A stretch of DNA of 64,000 nt from Paragordius varius. Its lineage: Eukaryota > Animalia > Nematomorpha. The stretch is from NCBI GenBank assembly GCA_964247055.1, contig OZ176056.1, forward strand, positions 8,618,001 through 8,682,000, given 5' to 3'. Under the pieces are notes generated by a model. It did not search any database. It saw nothing but the letters and a program-made list of their open reading frames with translations, and was not told where the DNA came from. This document shows, one piece after another, positions 5,731 through 55,979 of this stretch. The position numbers and the translations under genes were made by a program. Every line of letters starts with the position of its first letter. Position 1 is the stretch's first letter.

Positions 5731-6798
5731 CTATCGAATGATATATGATTCTTAAAGAAATTTTTGATTGCCATTTTCGGCAAAGAAAGTTAAAAAACAT
5801 AAACATTTATATATATTATATGACATACGTCCCAAGTCAATGAGCAGTGTTTTAGTCCGGTTTTTGGAAAGATTTTCCCAGCCTGATATATTTTTAAGTC
5901 CCGAATGGTAGGCTGAGAAGTAATGTAATGCTGGTAAATTGGACAACTCTGAAATATTTAATGAATCAAATCGATTGAAATTCAAAATTATTTGTTCAAT
6001 TGATTCATTATATGCAACGTTTGTAAAGTCAACGGAGGTGATATTACTTTTATGGATAATAAGGGTTTTTAAATGGGGCCATTTTACAATCGGTTTCAAG
6101 TCTCGCAACCCCCAAACATATAATTCTAAAAATTCAATATTATTTGATTTCATAAATATGTCGGGAGTAACCGTAAAAAAGGTGAGGGTCAAAGATTTTA
6201 GGGTTTTAGGGAAATATTGTGCAGAGTTTATTATGTTTGTATCACGACGACTCATAGATCTGCCTTTTATGGTTAAGGAGCGAATCATAGGGAATTTTTG
6301 CAATATGTCAGATAAATCATAATGATCTTCCGACGCGTACAAAATCACTTCTTTCGCGTTTAAATTTTTAGCACCAAAAGTTTTTGCGTATGATTTCACC
6401 TCAAGAGTTTCCAATCTAGGCAAATAAGCTTGCATGGCACTATCATTTGTTGCGTATAGAGTTAATCTCTTATGCTTGAGTGATTAATATGACCTACCAA
6501 ACTAACTTTTTCAAGGTATAAAGTTACGTTTTGCAACATTGGAAAGAGATGTAAGATGGTCCAATTGAAATCTTTCCCAAAACCTAATATTTTAAGATCA
6601 ATCGATTCAACCATTGTATGTGTCGAAGACAATACCTTTAACAACTCATATGTATGATTAATATTTGCATCGTAATCTCGATTGGATATTTTAATATTCC
6701 GTAAAGTCAATCCCTCATTCAAAATGTATTGCGTTGGTGGATAGCACTTGAATGTACTGGTCATTTAGAACAAAAAGATTTATAATTTTAAACATCAT
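5731..6798 (-). pseudogene. Single-exon leucine-rich-repeat protein gene, probably secreted or surface-located; frameshifted
   Basis: ORFs 6462-6764 and 5752-6435 join by a 1-nt frameshift. LRR-like units: LFPMLQNVTLYL, YLPRLETLEV, KFPMIRSLTIKG, FPKTLKSLTL, WPHLKTLIIHKSNITSV, IEQIILNFNRFDSL, LSNLPALHYFSAYHSGLKNI. An LRRCT-like NIYKCLCFL motif follows. A hydrophobic MMFKIINLFVL start lies 1 nt out of frame. Confidence 0.7.
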
Positions 6799-8759: not shown

Positions 8760-8872
8760 GAAATGCGTGGGTCTCGGCCTGCTTCGCAGCCCGAGGAAGT
8801 CCTGCGGACTTCTTTAAGGAAATGAACCAACTCCAATCCCTCACCCTAACCCTAGCCCACAAACTCGAAACC
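8760..8872 (-). mobile_element. ~115 bp interspersed element with a telomere-like G-tract and a double hairpin (G-rich strand is minus here)
   Basis: Near-identical inverted copy at 19710-19825 in different flanks. Hairpins at 8773-8795 and 8796-8812; CCCTCACCCTAACCCTAGCCC at 8838-8858. Confidence 0.75.
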
Positions 8873-9136
8873 CTAAAAGTTTTTTACCCCTTATTGTAAA
8901 ATAAATTTTTGCTAAATACCTTAAAATCCCTACCATTAAAAAGCCATTGATCATGTGTTTAGTATGTTTATTACATGTAAACCATAAAATAAAACAGTTT
9001 AATTAGCAATGTTTACTAGAAATCAAGAGAAAAGGCCATTCATTAAAAGCAAAAATATTTTAAGAATAAATGATCAAGAACTATTACATGAAAACGAACA
9101 TAATAGAAAGCATTTTCAATTACAATATCCATTTAA

Positions 9137-9293
9137 ATGGTTGCTTATTTCATACCATAGTAGGGCAATTCTCAACACAGTAGTGTATGGAAAAACCATA
9201 CAAAGACTTCAATAAACCATTATTTTCTTCCTTTTTTCCATACAGTACTGTTGTGTTGCAATTTGCCTTACTATTATAGAAATAAGCAACCAT
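9137..9293. mobile_element. MITE-like element with ~60 bp inverted arms, flanked by TAA on both sides
   Basis: ATGGTTGCTTATTTCATACCATAGTAGGGCAATTCTCAACACAGTAGTGTATGGAAAAA versus TTTTTCCATACAGTACTGTTGTGTTGCAATTTGCCTTACTATTATAGAAATAAGCAACCAT. TAA at 9134-9136 and 9294-9296 may be a TSD or part of the arms. Confidence 0.6.
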
Positions 9294-11435
9294 TAAAACA
9301 TATATTGTAATATAAATTTAAATTAACTGAACACGTTTGAAAAACATCGCCATAGAGATAAAAGTATTTATCGACAATAATTAAAGAATATTCTTAAAGA
9401 GATATAAATTAAAATGACAAATAAGACCATTGTTCAAAGTTATTTGAAAAAATGTAATTTATTCAAAAAATTCATTAATAAACTATAATAAAGGTATATT
9501 ATATATTATTTAAATTATGGTATAAATTTATCACCTAATCAATAAAAGTGAATCAAAATATTATTCAATAAACTTGGGATTTATAAATAAAAATAAAAAC
9601 ATTTTACAATAATTTAAATTAATGAATTATTAGTGATAAAAAGGTAAGTATTCTAATATATTCATTAAAATTAGTTATTTATAATATAATTATTTATAAA
9701 AATTACTAAACTAAAAAGAGGTATATTATCTATTTTCTAAATAAAAAACAGCTGAAAAAACTAGTTACCAAAATTTTAATATTAAACTTAAAATTAATGA
9801 AATTTTAAATATACAAAAAATCATTAGTTAAGAAAGTCTCCAATTTAAATTTGTTTATAATTGGTGATAAAAAATTTAATTTATATTAATTTTATTTTTA
9901 CGTTTGACAAATATTACTTGTAGTAATCAAAAATTTTAGTTATCAAAAATATAATTATCTAAACAGCTGACCATGAAAATTGGTTATTTAATACACTGTA
10001 AGACAGAAAAACAGATATTTTAATTTGATAATATTTAAAAAAAGAGATTCTTATCAATAGATTACTATAGAAATATTCTAAATTAGTTGTTTGTTGTTCT
10101 TATATCTTAGCAAAAATTCTTTAAGAGCCAAAATTTTGAAAAACTCAGGTAACTTTATATAAAAATATTTAAATAATGGTTAAGATATACCATAATAACT
10201 TTGGAGATTTTGACTTTTCCGCGCACACAATGTTCAGATACCACATCATTCTAATTGAATATAAAATAATGTTTAATAATTAAATGAATATTTTTTCTTT
10301 AACAGAAATGCTGGTTGTTATATAGTTTTTTCAATCATAGTTAACGGTTTATTAATGATATTTAGCGTTGTTTTAAAAAAATGCGTTCACAAAAACATTA
10401 TAGCGGTTATTTCTTATTTATTACTAATTAACAAAAAATAAATAAATTGATTAATATTTAGCTTTTTTAGGAAAAAAAACAAATTAACTATTTATTTCTA
10501 ATAAAATTTAGCGTTTTTTGATGAAAATTAGGTTAAATGTAATCATTTATATAAGAATGAAAAACATAGTTTTGAAAATATCAAAAACAAACAGCTGTTA
10601 CGGCTAATTCAATTAAATTGAAAAAAACATATATATTTAGCTAAAATTCTGCTAAAAAAATTTTTTTTATACTGCCCTGTAGTTTTTCAAAATTATCTTA
10701 CAGTAATTTATATCAGCTGATTTTTAATAAATATTGGAGAATAATTATTAAATTTGGCTGTTTTAATAAAAAAATACTAATTGCATATTTTGGCTGTAGT
10801 TAAAAAATTTTATAAAAAAATATCAGTTTTTAATTATAATTGAACTGTATTATAAAGGATATCAACATAACTCTCCTATTAGAAATAGCTAGGGGTTTAT
10901 TGGTATATAACTATATTATTAAAATCCAACTGTTTCTAAGCAATTAAATAACTTATAAAACCAAGGTTTTAATTAGGTTATTTATATGCATATTCAAATT
11001 TTTAAAAGGAGCTCTGTTTTAGAGTTTTTTTAAAAAATATAAGCTAATTAACGGGTATAAAAATTTAAGCTTTTTACAAAAAATTTACTCTTTAAAAACC
11101 TAATTAATCAACTTTTTTTATAAATGTGGCATTTGGATAATTAAAGTAAAAATAAATACCAAATTCCGAAATATTCAAGGCTTACATTTTTTATTACGAT
11201 TCGTTTCAGTTTTTGCGCAAATAATCGATTAAGGCAACGCATTTCTATATTAATATAAGGTAAAAATTATAAATTGTTATATAAAAATATATTATTAAAC
11301 AGTATTTTTAATAAATCAACTGTATAAATTAATCATCAGTTAAAAGAAACCATAAATAATCAACTGTACAAATAAATAAACTGTTTTAAATATTATGAAC
11401 TATTTAGATAAATTAAATAAATCAGCTGATTATAT

Positions 11436-13495
11436 AAACAACTGAATAATAAAACAACTGAATAATAAAACAACTGAATAATAAAACAACTGAATAATAA
11501 AACAACTGAATAATAAAACAACTAAATAATAAAACAACTGAATAATAAAACAACTGAATAATAAAACAACTGAATAATAAAAACAACTGAATAATAAAAA
11601 CAACTGAATAATAAAAACAACTGAATAATAAAAACAACTGAATAATAAAAACAACTGAATAATAAAAACAACTGAATAATAAAAACAACTGAATAATAAA
11701 AACAACTGAATAATAAAAACAACTGAATAATAAAAACAACTGAATAATAAAAACAACTGAATAATAAAAACAACTGAATAATAAAAACAACTGAATAATA
11801 AAAACAACTGAATAATAAAAACAACTGAATAATAAAAACAACTGAATAATAAAAACAACTGAATAATAAAAACAACTGAATAATAAAAACAACTGAATAA
11901 TAAAAACAACTGAATAATAAAAACAACTGAATAATAAAAACAACTGAATAATAAAAACAACTGATTATTAAAAACCACTGATTAATAAAAACAACTGATT
12001 AATAAAAACAACTGATTAATAAAAACAACTGATTAATAAAAACAACTGAATAATAAAAACAACTGATTATTTAAACAACTGATTAATTAAAACAACTGAT
12101 TATTTAAACAACTGATTAATTAAAACAACTGATTAATTAAAACAACTGGTTGAATAAAAACAAATGATTAATTAAAACAACTGGTTGAATCAAAACAACT
12201 GATTGATAAAAACAACTGATTGATAAAAACAACTGATTGATAAAAACAAATAATTAATAATGACAACTGATTGATAAAAACAACTGAATAATAAAAACAA
12301 CTGAATAATAAAAACAACTGAATAATAAAAACAACTGAATAATAAAAACAACTGAATAATAAAAACAACTGAATAATAAAAACAACTGAATAATAAAAAC
12401 AACTGAATAATAAAAACAACTGAATAATAAAAACAACTGAATAATAAAAACAACTGAATAATAAAAACAACTGAATAATAAAAACAACTGAATAATAAAA
12501 ACAACTGAATAATAAAAACAACTGAATAATAAAAACAACTGAATAATAAAAACAACTGATTATTAAAAACCACTGATTAATAAAAACAACTGATTAATAA
12601 AAACAACTGATTAATAAAAACAACTGATTAATAAAAACAACTGAATAATAAAAACAACTGATTATTTAAACAACTGATTAATTAAAACAACTGATTATTT
12701 AAACAACTGATTAATTAAAACAACTGATTAATTAAAACAACTGGTTGAATAAAAACAAATGATTAATTAAAACAACTGGTTGAATCAAAACAACTGATTG
12801 ATAAAAACAACTGATTGATAAAAACAACTGATTGATAAAAACAAATAATTAATAATGACAACTGATTGATAAAAACAACTGAATAATAAAAACAACTGAA
12901 TAATAAAAACAACTGAATAATAAAACAACTGAATAATAAAAACAACTGAATAATAAAAACAACTGAATAATAAAAACAACTGAATAATAAAAACAACTGA
13001 ATAATAAAAACAACTGAATAATAAAAACAACTGAATAATAAAAACAACTGATTAATAAAAACAACTGATTAATAAAAACAACTGATTAATAAAAACACCT
13101 GATTAATAAAAACAACTGAATAATAAAAACAACTGAATAATAAAAACAACTGAATAATAAAAACAACTGAATAATAAAAACAACTGAATAATAAAAACAA
13201 CTGAATAATAAAAACAACTGAATAATAAAAACAACTGAATAATAAAAACAACTGAATAATAAAAACAACTGATTAATAAAAACAACTGATTAATAAAAAC
13301 AACTGATTAATAAAAAAAACTGATTAATAAAAACAACTGATTAATAAAAACAACTGATTAATTTAAACAACTGATTAATTAAAAACAACTGATTGATAAA
13401 AACAACTGATTGATAAAAACAACTGATTGATAAAAACAAATAATTAATAATGACAACTGATAAATTAAAAAACCTGAAATATCAAAACAACTCAA
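11436..13495. repeat. 17-bp satellite (AAAAACAACTGAATAAT)n with 16-bp and variant units and a 595-bp higher-order duplication
   Basis: Directly visible; explains all the 17-aa-periodic minus-strand ORFs. Confidence 0.97.
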
Positions 13496-13910
13496 ATTAA
13501 AAAACAAATATTTTAAAAAATTTTAAAACATTTAATATAACTATAATATTAATCAAGAATTTGAATTATTAAACTGTAAAAAATTACCAATTCAAAAATA
13601 TCAAGCCAAAATCCTTTGCTTTACGATTTGTTTGAGTTTTTGCGCAAATAATTGATTGAGGCAACACATTCTAAAAAAATAATGAAAATATATAAATTGA
13701 ATATAAACGATTAATTACAATATAATAATTCAAAAAAACGCTATTTAAGAATGAATGATATGTTTTGTGTTTAATTATCTAAAAAACCAATTTGCTGGCA
13801 TTCAAGTAATTTTGCCGAATTGAGCGAATTAATATTTATAATGAAAGCATTTTTTTAAACTTTCCGATTTTTAGAATTATTATCAGTACAAAATTTGGGT
13901 TTATAGGCAT

Positions 13911-16790
13911 ATTTTTAACCGATTACCAAATTTTAAGAAAATTTTAACCGATTTTAGCAAATCTTAAAAAAACTTTAACCGATTTTTAGCCTATTATAAG
14001 AAAACTTTAACCGATTTTTAGCCTATTATAAGGAAACTTTAACCGATTTTTAGCCTATTATAAGGAAACTTTAACCGATTTTTAGGCAAATTAGTAAAAA
14101 ACTTTAACGCATTTTTAGCATATTTTAACCGATTTTCAGCAAATTCTAAGGAAACTTTAACCAATTTTTAGCAAATTTTAGGGTAACTTTAACCGATTTT
14201 TAGCAAAACTTAAGGAAACTTTAACCGATTTTTAGCAAATTTTAGGGTAACTTTAACCGATTTTTAACAAAACTGAAGGAAACTTTAACCAATTTTTAGC
14301 AAATTTTAAGGAATCTTTAACCGATTTTTAGCCTTTTTATAAGGAAACTTTAACTGATTATTAGCAAATTTTAAGGAAACTTTAACCGATTTTTAGCCTA
14401 TTATAAGGAAACTTTAACCGATTTTAGCAAATTTTAGGGAAACTTTAACCGATTTTTAGCAAATTTTAAGGAAACTTTAACCGATTTTTAGCAAATTTTA
14501 AGGAAACTTTAACCGATTTTTAGCAAATTTTAAGGAAACTTTAACCGATTTTTAGCAAATTTCAGGGAAACTTTAACCGATTTTTAACAAAACTTAAGGA
14601 AACTTTAACCGATTTTTAACAAAACTTAAGGAAAGTTTAACCGATTTTTAGCAAATTTCAGGGAAACTTTAACCGATTTTTAGCAAATTTTAAGGAATCT
14701 TTAACCGATTTTTACCAAATTTTAAGAAAATTTTAACCGATTTTAGCAAATCTTAAGAAAACTTTAACCGATTTTTAGCAAATTTTAAGAAAACTTTAAT
14801 CGATTTTTAACAAAACTTAAGGAAACTTTAACCAATTTTTAGCAAATTTTAGGGAAACTTTAACCGATTTTTAACATTAAGGAAACTTTAACCGATTTTT
14901 AACAAAACTTAAGGAAACTTTAACCGATTTTTAGCAAATTTCAGGGAAACTTTAACCGATTTTTAGCAAATTTTAAGGAATCTTTAACCGATTTTTTGCA
15001 ATTTTTAAGGAAATTTTAACCGATTTTTAACAAAACTTAAGGAAACATTAACCGATTTTTAGCAAATTTCAGGGAAACTTTAACCGATTTTTAACAAAAC
15101 TTAAGGAAACTTTAACCGATTTTTAACAAAACTTAAGGAAACTTTAACCGATTTTTAGCAAATTTCAGGGAAACTTTAACCGATTTTTAACAAAACTGAA
15201 GGAAACTTTAACCGATTTTTAACAAAACTGAAGGAAACTTTAACCGATTTTTAACAAAACTTAAGGAAACTTTAACCGATTTTTAGCAAATTTTAGGGTA
15301 ACTTTAACCGATTTTTAACAAAACTGAAGGAAACTTTAACCGATTTTTAGCAAATTTCAGGGAAACTTTAACCGATTTTTAACAAAACTTAAGGAAACTT
15401 TAACCGATTTTTAGCAAATTTCAGGGAAACTTTAACCGATTTTTAACAAAACTTAAGGAAACTCTAACCGATTTTTAACAAAACTTAAGGAAACTTTAAC
15501 CGATTTTTAGCAAATTTCAGGGAAACTTTAACCGATTTTTAACAAAACTGAAGGAAACTTTAACCGATTTTTAACAAAACTGAAGGAAACTTTAACCGAT
15601 TTTTAACAAAACTGAAGGAAACTTTAACCGATTTTTAACAAAACTTAAGGAAACTTTAACCGATTTTTAGCAAATTTTAGGGTAACTTTAACCGATTTTT
15701 AACAAAACTGAAGGAAACTTTAACCGATTTTAGCAAATTTTAGGAAAACTTTAACCGATTATTAGCCTATTATAAGGAAACTTTAACCGATTTTAGCAAA
15801 TTTTAGGGAAACTTTAACCGATTTTTAGCAAATTTTAAGGAAACTTTAATCGATTTTTAACAAAACTTAAGGAAACTTTAACCGATTTTTAGTAAATTTT
15901 AAGGAAATTTTAGCAAATTTTGAAAAATTTTAACCGATTTTTAGCAAATTTTAAGGAAACTTTAACCGATTTTTAGCAAATTTTAAGGAAATTTTAACCG
16001 ATTTTTAGCAAATTTCAGGGAAACTTTAACCAATTTTTAGCAAATTTTAGGGAAACTTTAACCGATTTTTAACAAAACTTAAGGAAACTTTAACCGATTT
16101 TTAGCAAATTTCAGGGAATCTTTAACCGATTTTTAACAAAACTTAAGGAAACTTTAACCAATTTTTAGCAAATTTTAGGGAAACTTTAACCGATTTTTAT
16201 CAAAACTTAAGGAAACTTTAACCGATTTTTAGCAAATTTCAGGGAAACTTTAACCGATTTTTAACAAAACTTAAGGAAACTTTAACCAATTTTTAGCAAA
16301 TTTTAAGGAAACTTTAACCGATTTTTAGCAAATTTCAGGCAAACTTTAACCGATTTTTAACAAAACTGAAGGAAACTTTAACCGATTTTTAACAAAACTG
16401 AAGGAATCTTTAACCGATTTTTACCAAATTTTAAGAAAATTTTAACCGATTTTAGCAAATCTTAAGAAAACTTTAACCTATTATTAGCAAATTTTAAGAA
16501 AACTTTAACCGATTATTAGCAAATTTTAAGAAAACTTTAACCGATTATTAGCCTATTATAAGAAAACTTTAACCGATTTTTAGCCTATTATAAGGAAACT
16601 TTAACCGATTTTAGCAAATTTTAAGGAAATTTTAACCGATTTTTAGGCAAATTAGTAAAAAACTTTAACGCATTTTTAGCATATTTTAACCGATTTTTAG
16701 CTAAATTTAAGAAAATTTTAACCGTTTTTAGGAATTGTTAAGAAAGAAACTTTAACCGATTTTTTTTAAGGTAACTTTAACCGATTTTTA
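13911..16790. repeat. ~32-bp satellite (AAACTTTAACCGATTTTTAGCAAATTTTAAGG)n with interspersed variant monomers
   Basis: 32-nt period visible at, e.g., 14461/14493. Constant core AAACTTTAACCGATTTTTA plus a small set of variant halves. Confidence 0.97.
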
Positions 16791-17790: not shown

Positions 17791-19709
17791 AAATGATTCG
17801 TAATTATACTGTATATATATAAAACATGCAAAACTTACATACATTGTTTGATCAGAATTGTATTAAAACGTATTTTCCCATTTCAGTCGTATAATATCAA
17901 CCATGTTTCCAATACTTTGTCGTTTTATTGTGGTCGATTGTTTCCAAGATTTGGTTGGACAGCTTCCTTTTTTCAATTAACAATGGTATTCTAATGATTA
18001 AGTATAAACAATTTACCTTATTATATAGTAATGGCAATACATTGTATAGCTGGAGAGATCAAGACATGACAAGGGAAGTTGCATATGCACCCAATCTATC
18101 CACCCATTTCAAAAAATGTGCGAGGAAAAAAAATTAAGTAAATGAAAAAAATGCAAAATTTTCGCCCTTTATATAGGGCATAATGTATATGTTATCTTTT
18201 TATCCAATCAAATTAATGTGTGCATTTGCGCCTTTTTCCCCCTTCTGGAAAAATGTTTCACATTCTTTTCCCTCTCTTTATTGCGCAACATTGTTTGGGC
18301 GCCTCTATTATATTATTATTCCCCCCCCCCCCATGTGCACATTCCAATAAAACATATAATATTATATATGATTCATCATATCTAAAAATAATCCTTTTTA
18401 TTACAATAATGCTATTTGGCTGGCGCCTATAAAGAAATGTAAATAAAATTCGGAGAAAAATATGTTAAAAAAATATGGCAATAATATTTTAACAATCTTT
18501 ATTAATTATAAATGAAAAATTTAAATTTATTTTCTTACTAAAATGTTTGATTACACAAATGGCTAATAGCAAAAATTAATTAATTAATTAATCTAATTTG
18601 TTTCAATATTAAAAAAAATAATTTTTCATAGAGGTATTTAAGTTTTAACCTGTGTAATTTGATTAATATATTGGTTTATAATTTAGTGTTCTTAGGTTTT
18701 TTTATATAAAACAGAATGTTTAAAGGCTTTTATAGATTATTATATAAAGATTTTAAATTATTTATTTTTGATTTTTTTCAAATGGTTTCTGCAATCATTT
18801 AATGTCAATTAATGTTATAATCAACTAACCTTCAACAACAAAGAGCTCTGAATTACGTTTTTTGAGTTTCCATCCAAAATAATTATAAATCATCACAGAT
18901 AATTATATTTAGGTAAAAGATATTCAAAATGTGCTTAAGCTTACGTAGATATTATTCTTTCTTAATCCATACTAATATATATATATTAGTAATCAATCAG
19001 ATATAAGTTATTATTTTGTTTTAATTCAACTAAAAAATTTGTAAATATAAGCATGAGAATAAGTTGTGTCCTGTGAGGATAAGGGTTATTGTAAGAAGCT
19101 TGGTTTCAGTTTTTGAATAGAAGGCCGAAACTCTGTCTTTTATTAAAAGTTACCTTTATTAAAACTAAATTTTAACTTTTTGTATACCATAGAACGAGAC
19201 AGAATATCGGGGACTTGCTATCTTAATATTAATTAACCTTTAAAAGTGTAATAATTCTCAACTGTCAAATGGTTGAATCCTAATTATTTTTGTTTAAAAT
19301 ATAATGGATTATTAATTAAATTATCCCGAAACCTTCTAAGCTTGCAATGTTAATTTCCTATCATTCATGCGAAATTATTTATAGTTCAATTTAAAAGTTA
19401 ATAAACAGTTCAATTAAAATATTAACAAATCTTTTAAAAGTCAATCAAGGGAGTTTCTTCATTCAATAACTATATATAACCACACGACAATAACGCGAAC
19501 AAACTAAAACACGATAACAATGTTGGATAAAAAAATAATTAATTCGTTCATTTTTTTAATAATTAGTTCCGGTTTTTAAAAGCTGAATTGTAATCTTTTC
19601 AAACGGCAGACATTTATCTTCTTTACTTTAATTGAAAAACCAATAAAAATCTTTGGTTATATGATTAAAAATGTAAATCATTTCAATCTCTAGTTCATAG
19701 TATGATATA

Positions 19710-19825
19710 AGGTTTCGACTTTGTGGGCTAGGGTTAGGGTGAGGGATTGAAGTTGGTTCATTTTTTTAAAGAAGTCCACAGGACTTCCTCGGGCTGCGAA
19801 GCAGGCCGAGACCCACGTATTTTCT
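19710..19825 (+). mobile_element. ~115 bp G-tract/double-hairpin element, inverted copy
   Basis: GGGCTAGGGTTAGGGTGAGGG...GAAGTCCACAGGACTTC CTCGGGCTGCGAAGCAGGCCGAG ACCCACG. Confidence 0.75.
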
Positions 19826-27150: not shown

Positions 27151-28215
27151 CTATCGAATGACATATGATTCGTAAAGAAATTTTTGATTGCCATTTTCGG
27201 CAAAGAAAGCTAAAAAACATTAACATTTATATATATTATATGACATACGTCCCAATTCAATGAGCAGTGTTTTAGTCCGGTTTTTGGAAAGATTTTCCCA
27301 GCCTGATATATTTTTAAGTCCCGAATGGTAGGCTGAGAAGTAATGTAATGCTGGTAAATTCGACAACTCTGAAATATTTAATGAATCAAATCGATTGTAA
27401 TTCAAAATTATTTGTTCAATTGATTCATTATATGCAACGTTTGTAAAGTCAACGGAGGTGATATTACTTTTGATATAAAGGGTTTTTAAATGGGGCCATT
27501 TTACAATCGGTTTCAAATCTCTCAACCCCCAAACATATAATTCTAAAAATTCAATATTATTTGATTTCATAAATATGTCGGGAGTAACCGTAAAAAAGGT
27601 GAGGGTCAAAGATTTTAGGGTTTTAGGGAAATATTGTGCGGAGTTTATTAAGTTTGTATCACGACGACTCATAGTTCTGCCTTTTATGGTTAAGGAGCGA
27701 ATCATAGGGAATTTTCGCAATATGTCAGATAAATCATAATGATCTTCCGACGCGTACAAAATCACTTCTTTGCGTTTAAATTTTTAGCACCAAAAGTTTT
27801 TGTGTATGTAATCACCTCAAGAGTTTCCAATCTAGGCAAATAAGCTTGCATGGCACTATCATTTGTTGCGTATAGAGTTAATCTCTTTATGCTTGAGTGA
27901 TTAATATGACCTACCAAACTAACTTTTTCAAGGTATTAAGTTACGTTTTGCAACATTGGAAAGAGATGTAAGATGGTCCAATTGAAATCTTTCCCAAAAC
28001 CTAATATTTTAAGATCAATCGATTCAACCATTGTATGTGTCGAAGACAATACCTTTAACAACTCATATGTATGATTAATATTTGCATCGTAATCTCGATT
28101 GGATATTTTAATATTCCGTAAAGTGAATCCCTCATTCAAAATGTATTGCGTTGGTGGATAGCACTTGAATGTACTGGTCATTTAGAACAAAAAGATTTAT
28201 AATTTTAAACATCAT
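27151..28215 (-). pseudogene. LRR pseudogene, copy 2
   Basis: Colinear with copy 1. In frame at SIKRLTL, but has TAA after NVT, a 1-nt deletion near 27770 and TAA after YKC. Confidence 0.7.
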
Positions 28216-30220
28216 GTAAATGGTTCATCTGATTTATATGAAGTTGTGAGTCACATGTGTTAATTTTAATTCTTCGACTGTGCATAGCAAAATAGATAAT
28301 AAACAGAGCAAAATATTTATATATGCTAAGCAATTTGGCTGTTTTAAAATATAAAGATTGCATCTAATTTTAACATAACGTAAATAGTATAGTCTAAATT
28401 CTTTAAATATAAGGCTTAAAATGCGGCCTCCGTTTTATAAAGTTGCGACCGTAAATATTATCCCGTCAGCAGACAGAACCGTCAATAATTCAAATATAAT
28501 TGATTGAAAGCAAGTATGATCGCAATCAGAAAAATATTTATAAGTAAAGGGTGGTGAGAAACTCAAATTCGAAGGCTTGAGGCCTTCTTCTCAAATGGCA
28601 ACAAGGGATGGGGACATGAATGAAACCAAGCAGCAAGGATTGCCGGTTTGAAGGAGCGAACTGATTACGAGGTAAATATATTGTTTAGGTGTATTGGGAG
28701 AAACTTTATTGGGGAGGCGTTCACGACGGAGCTGTGCAAAGGAGCTACCCAACCAGAAGCCCTGAATCGAGGTCCTGGACTTGGGAATGGCCTATCAATG
28801 GGATGACATATGGAAAAGAGGTAAACCTAATGTTTAGGTGGGGGGATTCTTGAGACGGAGCTTGTCAAGCCAGCACTACCCCTGATGATCAAAACAAGCT
28901 ACTTGGGAGCAGGCTTGGTTGTTGGATGGCGACTTGCTCGGATCAAACAACACTGCTACTTGGAGGATGGCATTCTGTTGAATGCACAACTCTCATTTTA
29001 CTTGTGGAGAGTTTTTGGGCCAAATGACTCTCTAGTGGGAGAATATTTCCTCCTTTGGGGAAATCAACTCTTGTTATTTTGAGAGAGTTGTTTTCTCCAA
29101 ACGTGTGAAGGAGGAGGATTTATTTCTCCCATTAGAGAGTGAGTCAGGCCCCCAAGTCCAAAATTTTATTTTGAGCACTCTTACTCCCGGACGCTCAAAA
29201 TAAAATTTTGGACTTAGAATATTTTTTAATTTTTTTTTCTCGCCCTTTGGGGGGGGGGGGGTTATATATATTTATTTATATTTTTTAATTTTTTTTTCAA
29301 AAAATATAAGATAAAGTAAGCATTATTTATTGACAATAATTATATAAAATATTCATTTTTCTGTTTGTTTTCATTCTTGTCTTGTTGGTTATTAATGATT
29401 AACGTTTTGAGATTATGGTTTGATTGGATTCGTATTTTTGTCATTCATGATCAACGTTTTAAGATGGTTTCATTGCATTATTCATGTATTTTCTGAATCT
29501 ATAAAAATTAATAAACATTAGTTTTAGAGATTAAATTTTCAATGTTATCATAACCTAATTTAAACTAGTAAATCAAATTTTAAATAATTTTTACAATTAT
29601 TGTCAATTAATTAGCATCTAGAAATTATTAGGAGGTTTAGAGCACTTTTTTTTTATAAATTTTGACGTATGAGCCATTTATTTATATAATAAAATCTTTA
29701 TTTTAAGATTTAGAGATATTAGCTGTAAACTAACTAATTTTAGCGGTTAATATTCAATATTAATTCTAAAATCACAATGATTAAAAATTTATTAAAGATG
29801 ATAAACCTATCCTTAATCTAAGAAATACACCGACTTTAACCCTTAATCTAAGCCTAACCCACAAGTTTGAAAGCCTTTAATTGTTAACCTAAACCGCAAT
29901 AAAATGAGTTTCAAAAAAATATTTTTATTCTTTTGAATAAAATAATATCAGCTATTTACAAAAAAATAACTGTTTATAAATATGATCTTCTATTAATTTT
30001 GTGGTTTTTAAATAATATTCAGACATATGCGGACTCTTTTACTTAGATATCAAATATCATAAAACAAACATAGTGTTAGGGTCAAAACAAATTTAGGAAG
30101 GCAATAATATCCTACCTATTATAAAATTATTTATTCAATGATTAAAAAACAAGTATTTCATTCAATAATTAACTACAATGGGATCAATTTAAATAATTCC
30201 TCTTATCAATTAATTAAAAA

Positions 30221-30327
30221 GAAATGCGTGGGTCTCGGCCTGCTTCGCAGCCCGAGGAAGTCCTGCGGACTTCTTTAAGGAAATGAACCAACTCCAATCC
30301 CTAACCCTAGCCCACAAACTCGAAACC
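30221..30327 (-). mobile_element. ~115 bp element, copy lacking one 6-bp G-tract unit
   Basis: As 8760-8872, but CCAATCCCTAACCCTAGCCC. Confidence 0.75.
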
Positions 30328-33300
30328 CTAAAAGTTTTTTACCCCTTATTGTAAAATAAATTTTTGCTAAATACCTTAAAATCCCTACCATTAAAAAGCC
30401 ATTGATCATGTGTTTAGTATGTTTATTACATGTAAACCATAAAATAAAACAGTTTAATTAGCAATGTTTACTAGAAATCAAGAGAAAAGGCCATTCATTA
30501 AAAGCAAAAATATTTTAAGATTAAATGATCAAGAACTATTACATGAAAACGAACATAATAGAAAGCATTATCAATTACAATATCCATTTAAATGGTTGCT
30601 TATTTCATACCATAGTAGGGCAATTCTCAACACAGTAGTGTATGGAAAAACCATACAAAGACTTCAATAAACCATTATTTTCTTCCTTTTTTCCATACAG
30701 TACTGTTGTGTTGCAATTTGCCTTACTATTATAGAAATAAGCAACCATTAAAACATATATTGTAATATAAATTTAAATTAACTGAACACGTTTGAAAAAC
30801 ATCGCCATAGAGATAAAAGTATTTATCGACAATAATTAAAGAAAATTCTTAAAGAGATATAAATTAAAATGACAAATAAGACCATTGTTCAAAGTTATTT
30901 CAAAAAATGTAATTTATTCAAAAAATTCATTAATAAACTATAAGTATATTATATATTATTTAAATTATGGTATAAATTTATCACCTAATCAATAAAAGTG
31001 AATCAAAATATTATTCAATAAACTTGGGATTTATAAGAAAATAAAAATAAAAACATTTTACAATAATTTAAATTAATGAATTATTAGTGATAAAAAGGTA
31101 AGTATTCTAATATATTCATTAAAATTAGTTATTTATAATATAATTATTTATAAAAATTACTAAACTAAAAAGAGGTATATTATCTATTTTCTAAATAAAA
31201 AACAGCTGAAAAAACTAGTTACCAAAATTTTAATATTAAACTTAAAATTAATGAAATTTTAAATATACAAAAAATCATTAGTTAAAAAGTCTTTAATTTA
31301 AATTTGTTTATAATTGGTGATAAAAAATTTAATTTATATTAATTTTATTTTTACGTTTGACAAATATTACTTGTAGTAATCAAAAATATAATTATCTAAA
31401 CAGCTGACCATGAAAATTGGTTATTTAATACACTGTAAGACAGAAAAACAGATAAATACAATAAAGTTGATAATATTTAAAAAAAGAGATTCTTATCAAT
31501 AGATTACTATAGAAATATTCTAAATTAGTTGTTTGTTGTTCTTATATCTTAGCAAAAATTCTTTAAGAGCCAAAATTTTGAAAAACTCAGGTAACTTTAT
31601 AAAAAAATATTTAAATAATGGTTAAGATATACCATAATAACTTTTGAGATTTTGACTTTTCCGCGCACACAATGTTCAGAAACCACATCATTCTAATTGA
31701 ATATAAAATAATGTTTAATAATTAAATGAATATTTTTTCTTTAACAGAAATGCTGGTTGTTATATAGTTTTTTCAATCATAGTTAACGGTTTATTAATGA
31801 TATTTAGCGTTGTTTTAAAAAAATGCGTTCACAAAAACATTATAGCGGTTATTTTCATTTATTACTAATTAACAAAAAATAAATAAATTGATTAATATTT
31901 AGCTTTTTTAGGAAAAAAACAAATTAACTATTTATTTCTAATAAAATTTAGCGTTTTTTGATGAAAATTAGGTTAAATGTAATCATTTATATAAGAATGA
32001 AAAACATAGTTTTGAAAATATCAAAAACAAACAGCTGTTACGGCTAATTCAATTAAATTGAAAAAAACATATATATTTAGCTAAAATTCTGCTAAAAAAA
32101 ATTTTTTTATACTGCCCTGTAGTTTTTCAAAATTATCTTACAGTAATTTATATCAGCTGATTTTTAATAAATATTGGAGAATAATTATTAAATTTGGCTG
32201 TTTTAATAAAAAAATAGTAATTGCATAATTTGGCTGTAGTTAAAAAATTTTATAAAAAAAATATCAGTTTTTAATTATAATTGAACTGTATTATAAAGGA
32301 TATCAACATAACTCTCCTATTAGAAATAGTTAGGGGTTTATTGGTATATAACTATATTATTAAAATCCAACTGTTTATTAGCGATTAAATAACTTATAAA
32401 ATCAGGATTTTAATTAGGTTATTTATATGCAAATTCAAATTTTTAAAAGGAGCTCTGTTTTAGAGTTTTTTTCAAAAAATATAAGCTAATTAACGGGTAT
32501 AAAATTTAAACTGTTTTTAATAAAATTAACTTTTAAAGGGCTTTTTACAAAAAATTACCCTTTAAAACCAAAAAATTAATTAACATTTTTATAAATGGCA
32601 TTGTGATAATTTAATAATGTAAAAATAAATACCAAATTTCAATATATATTCAAGCCAAACGTTTTCCATTACGATTCGTTTAAGTTTTTGCGAATTCAGG
32701 CAACGCATTTCTAAATTAATATAAGGTATATATTATACATTGCTATATTAAAATGTATATATTAATAGTATTATAATAAATTAACTGTTTGAATAAATAA
32801 ACTGTATAAATCATAAATATTTCACTTTTAATATAAATCAACTGTTATAGTTGAATCAGTATAAATAAATCATAAATTTTTGTCATTCATGATCAACGTT
32901 TTAAGATGGTTTCATTGCATTATTCATGTATTTTCTGAATCTATAAAAATTAATAAACATTAGTTTTAGAGATTAAATTTTCAATGTTATCATAACCTAA
33001 TTTAAACTAGTAAATCAAATTTTAAATAATTTTTACAATTATTGTCAATTAATTAGCATCTAGAAATTATTAGGAGGTTTAGAGCACTTTTTTTTTATAA
33101 ATTTTGACGTATGAGCCATTTATTTATATAATAAAATCTTTATTTTAAGATTTAGAGATATTAGCTGTAAACTAACTAATTTTAGCGGTTAATATTCAAT
33201 ATTAATTCTAAAATCACAATGATTAAAAATTTATTAAAGATGATAAACCTATCCTTAATCTAAGAAATACACCGACTTTAACCCTTAATCTAAGCCTAAC

Positions 33301-33662
33301 CCACAAGTTTGAAAGCCTTTAATTGTTAACCTAAACCGCAATAAAATGAGTTTCAAAAAAATATTTTTATTCTTTTGAATAAAATAATATCAGCTATTTA
33401 CAAAAAAATAACTGTTTATAAATATGATCTTCTATTAATTTTGTGGTTTTTAAATAATATTCAGACATATGCGGACTCTTTTACTTAGATATCAAATATC
33501 ATAAAACAAACATAGTGTTAGGGTCAAAACAAATTTAGGAAGGCAATAATATCCTACCTATTATAAAATTATTTATTCAATGATTAAAAAACAAGTATTT
33601 CATTCAATAATTAACTACAATGGGATCAATTTAAATAATTCCTCTTATCAATTAATTAAAAA

Positions 33663-33769
33663 GAAATGCGTGGGTCTCGGCCTGCTTCGCAGCCCGAGGA
33701 AGTCCTGCGGACTTCTTTAAGGAAATGAACCAACTCCAATCCCTAACCCTAGCCCACAAACTCGAAACC
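33663..33769 (-). mobile_element. ~115 bp element, copy in the internal duplication
   Basis: Matches 30221-30327. Confidence 0.75.
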
Positions 33770-36321
33770 CTAAAAGTTTTTTACCCCTTATTGTAAAATA
33801 AATTTTTGCTAAATACCTTAAAATCCCTACCATTAAAAAGCCATTGATCATGTGTTTAGTATGTTTATTACATGTAAACCATAAAATAAAACAGTTTAAT
33901 TAGCAATGTTTACTAGAAATCAAGAGAAAAGGCCATTCATTAAAAGCAAAAATATTTTAAGATTAAATGATCAAGAACTATTACATGAAAACGAACATAA
34001 TAGAAAGCATTATCAATTACAATATCCATTTAAATGGTTGCTTATTTCATACCATAGTAGGGCAATTCTCAACACAGTAGTGTATGGAAAAACCATACAA
34101 AGACTTCAATAAACCATTATTTTCTTCCTTTTTTCCATACAGTACTGTTGTGTTGCAATTTGCCTTACTATTATAGAAATAAGCAACCATTAAAACATAT
34201 ATTGTAATATAAATTTAAATTAACTGAACACGTTTGAAAAACATCGCCATAGAGATAAAAGTATTTATCGACAATAATTAAAGAAAATTCTTAAAGAGAT
34301 ATAAATTAAAATGACAAATAAGACCATTGTTCAAAGTTATTTCAAAAAATGTAATTTATTCAAAAAATTCATTAATAAACTATAAGTATATTATATATTA
34401 TTTAAATTATGGTATAAATTTATCACCTAATCAATAAAAGTGAATCAAAATATTATTCAATAAACTTGGGATTTATAAGAAAATAAAAATAAAAACATTT
34501 TACAATAATTTAAATTAATGAATTATTAGTGATAAAAAGGTAAGTATTCTAATATATTCATTAAAATTAGTTATTTATAATATAATTATTTATAAAAATT
34601 ACTAAACTAAAAAGAGGTATATTATCTATTTTCTAAATAAAAAACAGCTAAAAAAACTAGTTACCAAAATTTTAATATTAAACTTAAAATTAATGAAATT
34701 TTAAATATACAAAAAATCATTAGTTAAAAAAGTCTTTAATTTAAATTTGTTTATAATTGGTGATAAAAAATTTAATTTATATTAATTTTATTTTTACGTT
34801 TGACAAATATTACTTGTAGTAATCAAAAATTTTTATAGTTATCAAAAATATAATTATCTAAACAGCTGACCATGAAAATTGGTTATTTAATACACTGTAA
34901 GACAGAAAAACAGATAAATACAATATTTTAAGTTGATAATATTTAAAAAAAGAGATTCTTATCAATAGATTACTATAGAAATATTCTAAATTAGTTGTTC
35001 TTATATCTTAGCAAAAATTCTTTAAGAGCCAAAATTTTGAAAAACTCAGGTAACTTTATAAAAAAATATTTAAATAATGGTTAAGATATACCATTTGACT
35101 TTTCCGCGCACACAATGTTCAGAAACCACATCATTATAATTGAATATAAAATAATGTTTAATAATTAAATGAATATTTTTTCTTTAACAGAAATGCTGGT
35201 TGTTATATAGTTTTTTCAATCATAGTTAACTGTTTATTAATGATATTTAGCGTTGTTTTAAAAAATAAATGCGTTCACAAAAACATTATAGCGGTTATTT
35301 CTTATTTATTACTAATTAACAAAAAATAAATAAATTGATTAATATTTAGCTTTTTTAGGAAAAAAACAAATTAACTATTTATTTCTAATAAAATTTAGCG
35401 TTTTTTGATGAAAATTAGGTTAAATGTAATCATTTATATAAGAATGAAAAACATAGTTTTGAAAATATCAAAAACAAACAGCTGTTACGGCTAATTCAAT
35501 TAAATTGAAAAAAACATATATATTTAGCTAAAATTCTGCTAAAAATTTTTTTTTTATACTGCCCTGTAGTTTTTCAAAATTATCTTACAGTAATTTATAT
35601 CAGCTGATTTTTAATAAATATTGGAGAATAATTTTTAAATTTGGCTGTTTTAATAAAAAAATAGTAATTGCATAATTTGGCTGTAGTTAAAAAATTTTAT
35701 AAAAAAATATCAGTTTTTAATTATAATTGAACTGTATTATAAAGGATATCAACATAACTCTCCTATTAGAAATAGCTAGGGGTTTATTGGTATATAACTA
35801 TATTATTAAAATCCAACTGTTTCTAAGCAATTAAATAACTTATAAAACCAAGGTTTTAATTAGGTTATTTATATGCATATTCAAATTTTTAAAAGGAGCT
35901 CTGTTTTAGAGTTTTTTTAAAAAATATAAGCTAATTAACGGGTATAAAAATTTAAGCTTTTTACAAAAAATTTACTCTTTAAAAACCTAATTAATCAATT
36001 TTTTTTATAAATGTGGCATTTGGATAATTAAAGTAAAAATAAATACCAAATTCCGAAATATTCAAGGCTTACATTTTTTATTACGATTCGTTTCAGTTTT
36101 TGCGCAAATAATCGATTAAGGCAACGCATTTCTATATTAATATAAGGTAAAAATTATAAATTGTTATATAAAAATATATTATTAAACAGTATTTTTAATA
36201 AATCAACTGTATAAATTAATCATCAGTTAAAAGAAACCATAAATAATCAACTGTACAAATAAATAAACTGTTTTAAATATTATGAACTATTTAGATAAAT
36301 TAAATAAATCAGCTGATTATA

Positions 36322-39640: not shown

Positions 39641-42557
39641 ATTGATTTTTATTTAATTTCTCATTTTTTTAACAAACTTTAAACAATTTTAAATAATTTT
39701 AGTGTATTTTTAAGAAACTTTAATACCATTTTTTTACTTTTTTTGAACCACCTTAAGTCATTTTATGTAATAAAAAATAAAAGACACGAAAAGAAGGCGT
39801 TATATTAATTATACGCCCGAAAACCCAAAACCAATTTGTTGTACATAATTTATATACTAGGAATTTTTTAGAGGAGGGGTGGTCAACAAGCGGCTCCTTA
39901 AATATTGAGGATGCCGCGAGAAATTTATATACAAGTTTTTAAAAAATTTAAGGAAAATTGATTATCTTAAACATATTTTCTGAATAAATTTTTCCGGAAT
40001 TTTGGCAATTTCCTAAAAAAATGATAACAAAATAGTGGTTTTTACAGTATCATTTATAATATCTAATAAAATGTTAGCTAATGCCCATATATTTAGCCAA
40101 TTTGGACCGCGAAGCCATAGAATATGAAATTATTTTTTAAGAAATTAAATTTTATAGGACGAGCATGCACCTAAAAAATAATAACTTAAGTTCACCTTTA
40201 TATGTTAACACTTCCTCTCCATTATCAAAAAAATTTTACAAAATTTTAGAGAAAGAAATTCAATACTAAAATATTTTACCAAGTGCTATAATTTATGTAA
40301 AATTATTTTAAATTGGAAGGATATTTTAGATTTCAAAACAAGCAAGCATCTAAATAATTATAACATATGTTCACCTTTCTATTTCATCTTCCTCAAACAA
40401 ATGAAAAAAAAAATTTTAAAAGATCAAGAAACGCACTTGTTAGCAATATAGTATCATAATTAGACATCTATTTAGTTTTTTTTTAAAAATGGATAATAAT
40501 AAAATATTACTAGGTTTGTGTTAAAATTTGCCAGATAGAATTGCCAAGTAAATGGCTAATAGCAAGAAAAGATTCTTGTTGAATTCAATAAATGTTCTTT
40601 ACTATCAATCGTATCTGACAATATTTTAATGCAAACCCAGCAATGCATTTGTAATTATACTGTATATATATAAAACATGGAAAACTTACATATATTGTTT
40701 GAGCAGAATTGTATTAAAACGTATTTTCCCATTTCAGTCGTATAATATCAACCATGTTTCCAATACTTTGTCGTTTTATTGTGGTCGATTGTTTCCAAGA
40801 TTTGGTTGGACAGCTTCCTTTTTTCAATTAACAATGGTATTCTAATGATTAAGTATAAACAATTTACCTTATTATATAGTAATGGCAATACATTGTATAG
40901 CTGGAGAGATCAAGACATGACAAGGGAAGTTGCATATGCACCCAATCTATCCACCCATTTCAGAAAATGTGCGAGGAAAAAAAAATTGTATAAATGAAAA
41001 AAATAAAATTTTCGCCCTTTATATAGGGCATAATGTATATGTTATCTTTTTATCCAATCAAATTAATGTGTGCATTTGCGCCTTTTTCCCCCTTCTGGAA
41101 AAATGTTTCACATTCTTTTCCCTCTCTTTATTGCGCAACATTGTTTGGGCGCCTCTATTTTATTATTATTCCCCCTCCCCCCCATGTGCACATTCCAATA
41201 AAACATATAATATTATATATGATTCATCATATCTAAAAATAATCCTTTTTATTACAATAATGTTATTTGGCTGGCGCCTATAAAGAAATGTAAATAAAAT
41301 TTGGAGAAAAATATGTTAAAAAAATATGGCAATAATATTTTAACAATCTTTATTAATAATAAATGAAAAATTTGAATTTATTTTCTTACTTAAATGTTTG
41401 ATTACACAAATGGCTAATATCAAAATTTATTAATTAATTAATCTAATTTGTTTCAATATTAAAAAAAATAATTTTTCATAGAGGTATTTAAGTTTTTACC
41501 GGTGTAATTTGATTAATATATTGGTTTATAATTAAGTGATCTTAGAATTTTTTTTCTAAAATAAAGCAGAATGTTTTTTAAAAAGTTTATAGATTATTAT
41601 CTAAAGATTTATAATTATTTTAATTTTATGCTTTGTGCAATCATCTAATATCAAATTAATGTTAAAATCAAATACATCATATAATAAGCTTTCAACAACA
41701 AAAGCTCTGATTTTTTTGGATTTCCAATTCATTAAAATCCATCATCACAGATAGTTTATTTAGGTAAAAGATATTCAAAGTGTGCTTACGATAATTACCA
41801 ATATATAATGATTCTCTCTTAATTCATACTAATATATATATTAATTTTAAAATAGGAATCAACAAATAAGTTATTATTCTGTTTTAATTCAATTAAAAAA
41901 TATGTAAATAAAATCGAAAATAAGTTATGTCCTGTGGGGATAAGGGTTAAAGTAAAAAGTTTGGTTTCAGTTTTTTAAACAGAAAGCTGAAAATCTGTTT
42001 TTCATTAAGAGTTATCTGAAACAAAATTTAAACTTTTTTATATCATAGAACGATACAGAATATCTGGGAATTGCTAACTTAACATTTAATAACCTTTAAA
42101 AGTGTAATAATTCTCAATTGAGAAATGGTTAAATCCTAACAATTTTATTAAAAATTATAATGGATTATTTATCCCAAAACTTTCTAAGCTTGCAATGTTA
42201 AATTCCCATCGTTCATGCGAAAATGTCTTTAGAATTAAGCAGTAATCAACAGTTTAATTTAAATATTAACTAATCTTTTAAAAATCAATCAAAAGAGTTT
42301 CTTCATTTAATAATTATGTATAACCACACGACAATAACATGAGAAAAGTAAAAGATATCAATGTTGGATAAAAATATCATTAAATTCTTCAACTTTTTTA
42401 ATAATTAGTTCCCGTTTTGAAAAAGCTGAATAAAAATCTTTTTCAAAACAATAGCATTTCATTACTTTACTACAGTTTGGAAAACCAATAAAAATATTTG
42501 GTTATATGGTGAAAAATGTAAATTTTTTTAATCTTAAATTTATAGTATGATACTGTA

Positions 42558-42675
42558 AGGTTTCGACTTTGTGGGCTAGGGTTAGGGTGAGGGATTGGAG
42601 TTGGTTCATTTTCTAAAAGAAGTCCGCAGGACTTCCTCGGGCTGCGAAGCAGGCCGAGACCCACGCATTATCTTA
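42558..42675 (+). mobile_element. ~115 bp element, full copy with both GNA loops and four G-tracts
   Basis: GTGGGCTAGGGTTAGGGTGAGGG...GAAGTCCGCAGGACTTCCTCGGGCTGCGAAGCAGGCCGAG. Confidence 0.75.
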
Positions 42676-50900: not shown

Positions 50901-51033
50901 TAACATCCTTAAAGAAACCAACCTATCCTTATCCGACCTAAACACCAAAACCGGAAATCGCAATGAATGGAGAAGCTATATTTTCAATGTTGCAATTAGT
51001 CGGAATCCACTTTAGCAAACAACAACAACAACA
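47986..51033 (+). mobile_element. RTE-clade LINE retrotransposon, near full length (3,048 bp), (CAA)n tail
   Basis: Absent at the homologous sites (3728 and ~25170). Single APE+RT ORF architecture, short 5' UTR, and a stop at 51013-51015 followed at once by CAAAC(AAC)n. Confidence 0.93.
48180..51015 (+). pseudogene. LINE ORF (apurinic endonuclease + reverse transcriptase), broken by about four frameshifts
   Basis: APE motifs: IATWN, LGISE, QIYAPTS, LGDFNS, LYTWRSP..RNQIDFIL, SDHNLL. RT motifs: KKG..NYRTIALI, QAGFRKGRGC, FVDFSKAFDSI, QGCVLSPILFN, YADD (50239-50250), YTYLGS. C-terminal RLFFGHIMR-like motif and RWMD. Frameshifts near 48893, 49390, 49720 and 50172. Confidence 0.93.
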
Positions 51034-52801: not shown

Positions 52802-53866
52802 CTATCGAATGATATATGATTCTTAAAGAAATTTTTGATTGCCATTTTCGGCAAAGAAAGTTAAAAAACATTAACATTTATATATATTATATGACATACC
52901 TCCCAAGTCAATGAGCAGTGTTTTAGTCCGGTTTTTGGAAAGATTTTCCCAGCCTGTTATATTTTTAAGTCCCGAATGGTAGGCTGAGAAGTAATGTAAT
53001 GCTGGTAAATTCGACAACTCTGAAATATTTAAGGAATCAAATCGATTGTAATTCAAAATTATTTGTTCAATTGATTCATTATATGCAACGTTTGTAAAGT
53101 CAACGGAGGTGATATTACTTTTGATATAAAGGGTTTTTAAATGGGGCCATTTTACAATCGGTTTCAAATCTCTCAACCCCCAAACATATAATTCTAAAAA
53201 TTCAATATTATTTGATTTCATAAATATGTCGGGAGTAACCGTAAAAAAGGTGAGGGTCAAAGATTTTAGGGTTTTAGGGAAATATTGTGCGGAGTTTATT
53301 AAGTTTGTATCACGACGACTCATAGTTCTGCCTTTTATGGTTAAGGAGCGAATCATAGGGAATTTTCGCAATATGTCAGATAAATCATAATGATCTTCCG
53401 ACGCGTACAAAATCACTTCTTTGCGTTTAAATTTTTAGCACCAAAAGTTTTTGTGTATGTAATCACCTCAAGAGTTTCCAATCTAGGCAAATAAGCTTGC
53501 ATGGCACTATCATTTGTTGCGTATAGAGTTAATCTCTTTATGCTTGAGTGATTAATATGACCTACCAAACTAACTTTTTCAAGGTATTAAGTTACGTTTT
53601 GCAACATTGGAAAGAGATGTAAGATGGTCCAATTGAAATCTTTCCCAAAACCTAATATTTTAAGATCAATCGATTCAACCATTGTATGTGTCGAAGACAA
53701 TACCTTTAACAACTCATATGTATGATTAATATTTGCATCGTAATCTCGATTGGATATTTTAATATTCCGTAAAGTGAATCCCTCATTCAAAATGTATTGC
53801 GTTGGTGGATAGCACTTGAATGTACTGGTCATTTAGAACAAAAAGATTTATAATTTTAAACATCAT
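52802..53866 (-). pseudogene. LRR pseudogene, copy 3
   Basis: Same lesions as copy 2; the extreme 3' end carries some unit-1-type alleles. Confidence 0.7.
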
Positions 53867-55872: not shown

Positions 55873-55979
55873 GAAATGCGTGGGTCTCGGCCTGCTTCGC
55901 AGCCCGAGGAAGTCCTGCGGACTTCTTTAAGGAAATGAACCAACTCCAATCCCTAACCCTAGCCCACAAACTCGAAACC
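55873..55979 (-). mobile_element. ~115 bp element, unit 3
   Basis: Matches 30221-30327. Confidence 0.75.

Follow-up and report, generated by a model that had tools for sequence, protein, structure and literature searches.

A Helitron terminator joined to a telomere-like tract in duplicated arrays of Paragordius varius: a probable chimeric relic

Introduction

What is a unit of ~115-130 bp that combines telomere-like repeats with two small hairpins, and how can an apparently dead relic of 115 bp be 93-97% uniform while its flanks decay? The question is raised by a stretch of 64,000 nucleotides from the nematomorph Paragordius varius (the window, i.e. the whole stretch of DNA analysed here). 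An initial annotation of the window had described a short element with a G-quadruplex (G4) motif and two C(GNA)G-triloop hairpins on the same strand. It was proposed to have been selected to fold as single-stranded DNA (ssDNA), and to be either a non-autonomous rolling-circle element of the Helentron or DINE-1 kind, the end-recognition module of a larger element, or a telomere-related cis element.

Here the module is traced through the window and through a 110.6-Mb genome assembly of 44 contigs, with copy statistics that rest on 58-76 distinct copies. It is fairly probable, in our judgement, that the module is a chimeric relic made of a Helitron terminator and a telomeric tract, which has been copied by duplication and homogenised by conversion.

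Architecture and setting of the module

The window (contig C7, 8618001-8682000) is a tandem array of units of ~21.5-25.7 kb with an internal duplication of 3442 bp, and its GC content is ~20-35%. The module itself has ~50% GC in a genome of 25% GC. In the window the full module occurs seven times and its 5' half alone twice, at three loci per tandem unit. Locus A lies on the minus strand (five copies), locus B on the plus strand (two full copies) and locus C also on the plus strand (two 5'-half copies). The annotation's three loci per unit in both orientations are thus borne out, with the qualification that locus C carries the 5' half only.

Read along the G-rich strand, copy A1 (8760-8877, minus strand) consists of a 16-nt leader (8862-8877), four telomere-like hexamers (TGTGGG-CTAGGG-TTAGGG-TGAGGG, 8838-8861), a 25-nt spacer (8813-8837), hairpin 1 (8796-8812), hairpin 2 (8773-8795) and a 13-nt tail (8760-8772), ACCCACGCATTTC. 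Hairpin 1 has a 7-bp stem and, in A1, the loop GCA (GAAGTCC-GCA-GGACTTC). Hairpin 2, which directly abuts it, has 5 + 4 bp around a G·G mismatch and the loop GAA (CTCGG-G-CTGC-GAA-GCAG-G-CCGAG). The remaining A copies, all on the minus strand, are A2 at the A locus of the next tandem unit (30221-30332), A3 within the 3442-bp internal duplicate (33663-33774), A4 (55873-55984) and A5 (59315-59426). The G3N3G3N3G3N3G3 pattern reported earlier is present in A1, but each of the other four A copies has lost one hexamer of the G-tract, and the strict G4 motif is therefore gone there.

At the second locus, whose flanks are unrelated to those of A, copy B1 (19708-19823, plus strand) has the hairpin 1 loop ACA instead of GCA. 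Copy B2 (42556-42671, plus strand) had been singled out as the clearest example and reads as it was first described, with the telomere-like tract at 42570-42593, hairpin 1 at 42619-42635, hairpin 2 at 42636-42658 and the tail at 42659-42671. Both copies at locus C are on the plus strand. In copy C1 (20572-20647) the leader, G-tract and spacer are followed by unrelated sequence in place of the hairpins, and copy C2 (43412-43483) likewise has the 5' half only. The paralogous position at another genomic locus (L012) retains decayed hairpins.

The 40-nt twin-hairpin string has seven matches in the window against none expected (at most three mismatches), and the 21-nt G-tract has five against none expected. 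The fold predicted for the 40-mer as ssDNA consists of precisely the two hairpins drawn above, with an energy of -16.0 kcal/mol for the G-rich strand (z -5.7) and -12.5 kcal/mol for its complement (z -3.7). The GNA reading of both loops is restricted to the G-rich strand, in agreement with the first description. An imperfect internal inverted match of 5-6 nt between the 5' side and the tail (GTGGG/CCCAC), which is not terminal, closes the predicted ssDNA fold.

Other features share the tandem units with the module. ORFs with weak LRR_4 and LRR_8 matches, below the Pfam cut-offs, occur at 5752-6435, 27220-27765 and 52871-53416, all on the minus strand. There is one per tandem unit, ~2.3-2.5 kb from an A-locus module and on the same strand, and these LRR-like ORFs appear to represent the gene content of the ~25 kb array units. 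A non-LTR retrotransposon (48180-51015, plus strand; APE PF03372, E 1e-12; RT PF00078, E 3e-16) is broken over at least four ORFs. As it is present in one tandem unit only, it was either inserted after the array had formed or lost from the other units. A dispersed repeat of ~190 bp (~9118-9311), ~240 bp from copy A1, has matches at 73-86% identity on both strands, to itself as well as to dozens of other loci, with 1084 genome-wide candidates at first look. By its appearance it belongs to a foldback or palindromic MITE family.

Long minisatellites with periods of 17 bp and 32 bp occupy 11355-12150 and 13875-15150 and equivalent positions in later units, and their differences in length account for part of the size variation of the tandem units. 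The 3442-bp tandem duplication (29434-32798 and 32876-36220, 95.6% identity) is found in units 2 and 3 and is absent from unit 1. Its right edge adjoins the 17-bp minisatellite, and its junction (32798-32876) does not fall at a module. Upstream of module B there is a GC-richer stretch at ~41000-41290, and the region ~41222-41452, which is mostly AT-rich, forms a second conserved island between paralogs on contigs C7 and C8 (0.89-0.94) with no convincing ORF.

The hairpin half is a Helitron 3' terminator

The hairpins of the module have close counterparts at the ends of transposons in the same genome. A pattern composed of the inner stem of hairpin 2, its outer 3' arm, seven free positions and CTAGT (CTGC-NNA-GCAG-NNCGAG-N7-CTAG-T) matches at least 600 genomic sites, which are spread evenly along the chromosomes, and has no match in reversed controls. 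Twelve of these CTAG-ended loci were inspected. Seven read poly-C, A, GAAGTCC-GAA-GGACTTC, CTCGGGCTGC-GTA-GCAGCACGAG, ATT(T/C)ACG, CTAG and a host T, and the other five have kept the tail with hairpin 1 degraded or absent. A complete element is present at one locus (L062), with an A/TC head and a CTAG/T tail (a slash marks the border between host and element). The Helitron Rep domain (PF14214) has 16 matches in the genome, most of them with in-frame stops. At the two best Rep loci the longest ORFs do not exceed 259 aa, although introns and uninspected copies could hide longer ones. One CTAG tail is found ~200 bp from an opposite-strand Rep match and ~7 kb downstream of a same-strand one.

The CTAG/T ends, the complete L062 element and the Rep domains nearby together identify the twin C(GNA)G hairpin as a canonical Helitron 3' terminator. 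The 40-nt twin hairpin of the module differs from the CTAG-ended Helitron tails of this genome by 2-4 mismatches. Its nearest relative is a CTAG-ended subfamily (loci L033 and L061) in which hairpin 1 is the same as the module's and hairpin 2 differs in the loop only. The module's GC-rich hairpins also stand a few nucleotides upstream of its 3' end, as in canonical Helitrons. The hairpin half of the module is the 3' terminator of the genome's main canonical Helitron family. The rolling-circle origin that was first suggested is thus upheld for this half, and the affinity that was proposed with Helentrons and DINE-1 is not, since the related genuine ends belong to canonical A/TC...CTAG/T Helitrons. 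In the complete element (L062, 3472-9993) the body consists wholly of a 1058-bp satellite that repeats the head segment, and a 477-bp satellite is seen at L063.

Variation in the terminator was followed in an alignment of 43 distinct hairpin sequences, taken from modules, from decayed copies and from canonical tails. The GNA loops of the first description are conserved: at least 93% of the sequences retain the initial G in each loop, all 43 retain the final A, and the middle position varies freely. Stem cells are paired in 94.8% of cases. Compensatory stem changes, for which a test had been proposed at the outset, number zero among these 43 sequences, and pairing is no better than in column shuffles. 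Support for the stems is the fold energy and the Helitron precedent, without covariation. Selection for folding as ssDNA, as proposed earlier, is a reasonable view of the hairpins, through their Helitron ancestry, and a conjecture for the whole chimera.

The 5' half is a telomere-like tract

The telomere unit of this genome is TTAGGG, as seen in the (CCCTAA)n at the start of contig C1; a 30-nt pattern of five TTAGGG units has ~10,000 genomic matches. The 5' half of the module holds four degenerate TTAGGG units in a 6-nt register, only one of them perfect, and in some copies the leader contains one more TTAGGG-like unit. Tandem units of the host telomere at an internal site are what define an interstitial telomeric sequence, and the 5' half is made up of a short tract of this kind and a 25-nt spacer. 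The earlier suggestion of a telomere-related G-tract agrees with this, as the in-phase hexamers match the genome's own unit.

Genuine Helitron tails have poly-C where the module has the telomere-like tract, and when the 5' half was compared, in both orientations, with the 170 nt that precede the hairpins in each of three such tails, no match was significant (p>0.1). An apparent similarity by eye of the 5' half to CAAACTTCGAACCCC was dropped on the same comparison.

The candidate G4 motif (four G3+ tracts with loops of 1-7 nt) is present in 45 of 76 distinct copies, and 34 of the 76 combine it with both perfect stems. Tract and loop positions of the motif are about equally variable and deletions of a hexamer are recurrent, which speaks against a specifically conserved G4.

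Distribution, boundaries and mobility

Across the genome the hairpin half has 105 matches and the G-rich half 134, with none for reversed-pattern controls. The copies cluster in few arrays with a spacing of ~23-27 kb, many of them near contig ends: contig C1 at 14.6 Mb, C2 at 14.7-15.0 Mb, C4 at 0.7-1.35 Mb, C5 at 13.2 Mb, C7 at 8.5-8.7 Mb, C8 at 5.3-6.2 Mb, and C9 at 0.02-0.05 and 3.5 Mb. The hairpin half is oriented forward in 53 cases and reverse in 52. Paralogous loci on different contigs share 2-3 kb of homology at 67-78% identity with the module at the same position, so that much of the copy number is due to segmental duplication. A search with flanks only found the A-locus flank in the C7 array alone and yielded no empty site. 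The hairpin string had no match in one metagenome scan, which is little informative as the collection is without eukaryotic genomes.

Direct pairs of modules 0.8-1.0 kb apart are common (L049, L050, L055, L057, L041, L054, L012 and the B-C pairs of the window). The downstream member is usually more decayed, and the intervening sequence varies with the flank family. In an array with ~8-9 kb spacing on contig C1 (L076-L079, 14.61-14.67 Mb) both hairpins have been precisely deleted from each module, which now reads G-tract, spacer and then CGAGACCCATGCATTT.

Pairwise BLAST among 34 flank-distinct representatives (528 comparisons) shows that homology ends sharply and at common points, 61-70 nt before hairpin 1 on the left and 50-69 nt after the start of hairpin 1 on the right. 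By these common boundaries the module is a discrete unit of ~115-130 bp. Sharp common ends in more than 10 unrelated flank contexts imply that the module once moved as a discrete unit. This raises the alternative that it is, now or recently, a mobile non-autonomous rolling-circle element of the mini-Helitron or Helentron/HINE type whose copies arose by transposition. In addition to the shared boundaries, such an element would be consistent with the two orientations, with at least 10 unrelated flank contexts, and with a 3' half that is a genuine Helitron terminator; the GTGGG/CCCAC match faintly resembles the asymmetric terminal inverted repeats of Helitron2.

Several features make this improbable. 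The 5' end of the module has no A/TC head, and homology across unrelated flanks begins with TT(A)AGG. The CTRR terminus is missing, as the module tail reads ACCCACGCATT(TC), i.e. CATT, where canonical ends read ...ACGCTAG/T. No T/T, T/Y or A/T target rule is seen in the bases flanking the boundaries, and neither a head nor a tail of a canonical Helitron lies in the window. A target-site duplication (TSD) is absent (longest flank-shared word of 4.77 nt against a null of 4.81), a result that for Helitrons is uninformative on its own. The copies are confined to arrays, in contrast to the ~600 dispersed canonical ends, and the insertion is common to paralogous flanks. The 5' half resembles neither Helitron bodies nor heads in either orientation (p>0.1), and no clearly intact RepHel is found among the 16 Rep matches.

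The statement that the element 'is or was mobile' is not borne out, given the lack of a Helitron 5' end, the CATT terminus, the absent TSD and copies that are mainly in duplicated arrays. It is unlikely that the module can still serve as a substrate for transposition; its rolling-circle ancestry is upheld, but current mobility is not supported. Assignment to Helentrons, Helitron2 or HINEs was rejected because the GTGGG/CCCAC match is non-terminal, the flank bases follow no rule and the relatives are of the A/TC...CTAG/T type. A MITE with terminal inverted repeats was rejected because the module is asymmetric and without a TSD.

Another class of dispersed sequence was considered and is highly improbable, namely a family of small structured RNA genes or a SINE. 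A length of ~115 nt, strong hairpins, many near-identical copies and AT-rich flanks would fit such a family, but the hairpins are accounted for by Helitron ancestry and no promoter block upstream of the module is common to the unrelated flank families. The whole window holds no rRNA, tRNA or other Rfam family at gathering thresholds, and one copy searched at E<=10 returned noise only. A tRNA-derived SINE was rejected since ARAGORN, which found no tRNA or tmRNA in its scan, gave no tRNA-like head and there is no A-rich or simple-repeat tail. The absence of tRNA boxes, a poly-A tail and a TSD had been noted at the outset, and all three points hold.

Uniformity of the copies

In alignments of old paralogs over 2-3 kb, the module is the best-conserved part, at 0.92-0.97 against a background of 0.6-0.85, with other islands at 0.89-0.94. 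To relate this to the age of the flanks, all pairs of copies were binned by flank identity and their substitution divergence was compared. The module differs by 0.004 where the flanks differ by 0.007, by 0.008 at a flank divergence of 0.016 and by 0.033 at 0.034; it differs by 0.031 at 0.115, 0.049 at 0.160 and 0.052 at 0.176, and by 0.067 where the flanks are unrelated. In young duplicates the module thus changes at ~0.5-1.0 times the flank rate, and its divergence plateaus at 3-7% while the flanks reach 12-18% or lose all homology. Homogenisation among copies predicts such a plateau, whereas constant purifying selection predicts a constant ratio.

Further observations bear on exchange between copies. 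Flank families are mosaic, with left family L0 joined to right families R0, R1 and R4, and R4 joined to L0 and L1. One triple arrangement fits unequal crossover between two direct modules ~0.9 kb apart. A G-to-T change at the mismatch position of hairpin 2 is polymorphic within three unrelated flank families, which is weak evidence for exchange as the chance of recurrent mutation at this site is, by a rough estimate, ~0.2. The central part of the module, to which the unstructured spacer belongs, is the most conserved, and conservation declines towards both edges. The plateau, the mosaic flanks, the shared variant and the central peak favour ectopic gene conversion among the copies as the process that has kept them uniform, a cause to which we give close to half of our confidence. 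The falling ratio of module to flank divergence and the plateau can also fit slow purging of mildly harmful variants.

Selection is the main rival, and we regard it as possible if somewhat unlikely that the module is a co-opted, functional cis-element under purifying selection. Candidate roles would be a docking site for a telomere-repeat-binding protein beside structured DNA, acting as a subtelomeric boundary, a site where replication or recombination is initiated, or a regulatory element of the arrays. The position of the module as the best-conserved island in old paralogs, the persistence of ~50% GC in a 25% GC genome, the enrichment in distal chromosome regions and the retention of the triloop G (at least 93%) and A (43 of 43) would all be expected of such an element. 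The sequence CTAGGGTTA would fit the type of duplex half-site bound by TRF-like Myb proteins, which we count for selection as well.

Against this reading, the module in young duplicates changes at ~0.5-1.0 times the rate of the flanks. Parts of the module have been lost while copies persist. In addition to the hexamer of the G-tract, both hairpins are gone from the cluster on contig C1, unrelated sequence has replaced them at locus C and the G-tracts have decayed in the second copy at L012. No more than 34 of 76 copies have kept the G4 motif together with both stems, covariation is absent from the stems, and orientation is random (53 forward, 52 reverse).

A proposed history of the module

The reading that we prefer, a chimeric relic copied by duplication and homogenised by conversion, can be set out as a series of steps. 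In a live Helitron the hairpins form on the displaced single strand and signal to RepHel where to stop and cut, a role for which C(GNA)G triloops seem well suited. In the line that led to the module, the terminal CTAG has become CATT, and the 5' end of the Helitron is missing. The ~100-130 copies would then have arisen mainly through segmental and tandem duplication of ~22-27 kb units with LRR-like ORFs in distal chromosome regions, with extra copies supplied by unequal recombination between neighbouring modules. Ectopic gene conversion, i.e. concerted evolution, would most likely maintain the uniformity of the copies, more so than constraint acting on every copy by itself. Breaks at the structure-prone sequences of the module may promote this conversion.

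A bolder version of this history, which we think doubtful, is that the module homogenises itself. A docking tract for telomere proteins beside hairpins prone to become single-stranded would be broken repeatedly and repaired from sister copies, so that it would drive its concerted evolution and would also make the subtelomeric arrays around it expand and reshuffle. If true, a transposon terminator would have been co-opted as a hotspot for the turnover of a subtelomeric gene family. The simpler alternatives have consequences too. With conversion, the module could serve as a tractable marker of ectopic exchange between subtelomeric arrays; with selection, a transposon terminator would have been co-opted.

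Comparison with known systems

No paper describing a chimera of a telomere tract and a terminator, or its concerted evolution, was found in a literature search, and the module is best placed by its likeness to several known systems. The right terminal sequence of canonical Helitrons has, on the transposed strand, one or more GC-rich hairpins ~7-11 nt before the 3' end, as does the module. The module departs from such an end in having CATT instead of CTAG, no TC head, a clustered instead of a dispersed distribution, and a spacer with a G-rich telomere-like tract in place of poly-C. For rolling-circle elements of eukaryotes, the twin C(GNA)G terminator of this family is a clean natural case of the mini-hairpin rule.

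Helitrons have recently been linked with chromosome ends in Paramecium and in cnidarians, and the chimera adds an animal case to these reports. In Paramecium aurelia, Helitrons insert in the telomeric repeats at germline chromosome ends (BMC Biol 2026, PMC13085455). As in the module, the terminal sequences of these telomere-capping elements adjoin short runs of host telomeric repeats near chromosome ends (PMC13085455). In Paramecium, however, full elements lie in C-rich-strand repeats, found before the left end and after the right one, and their polarity relative to the chromosome end is fixed (PMC13085455), whereas the module has a degenerate G-rich tract that precedes, on one and the same strand, an orphan terminator, in random orientation and without a full element. 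In Hydractinia and Nematostella, derivatives of Helitrons amplify locally in subtelomeres (Mob DNA 2025, PMC11934779). The Hydractinia element HSymSHlR forms huge tandem arrays of 372-bp units that make up 26% of the genome (PMC11934779); the module differs in being 115 bp long and in having 2-3 copies inside gene-bearing units of ~25 kb.

The 5' half is comparable to short interstitial telomeric sequences, which likewise consist of a few degenerate host telomere units at internal sites. Such sequences are unstable and prone to recombination. The tract of the module differs in being fixed to transposon hairpins and copied with them as one unit. The module also resembles dispersed short repeats that, as is generally known, undergo concerted evolution by ectopic conversion: in both, how far copies have diverged does not depend on how old their flanks are, and conversion would be the putative process at work in the arrays of P. 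varius.
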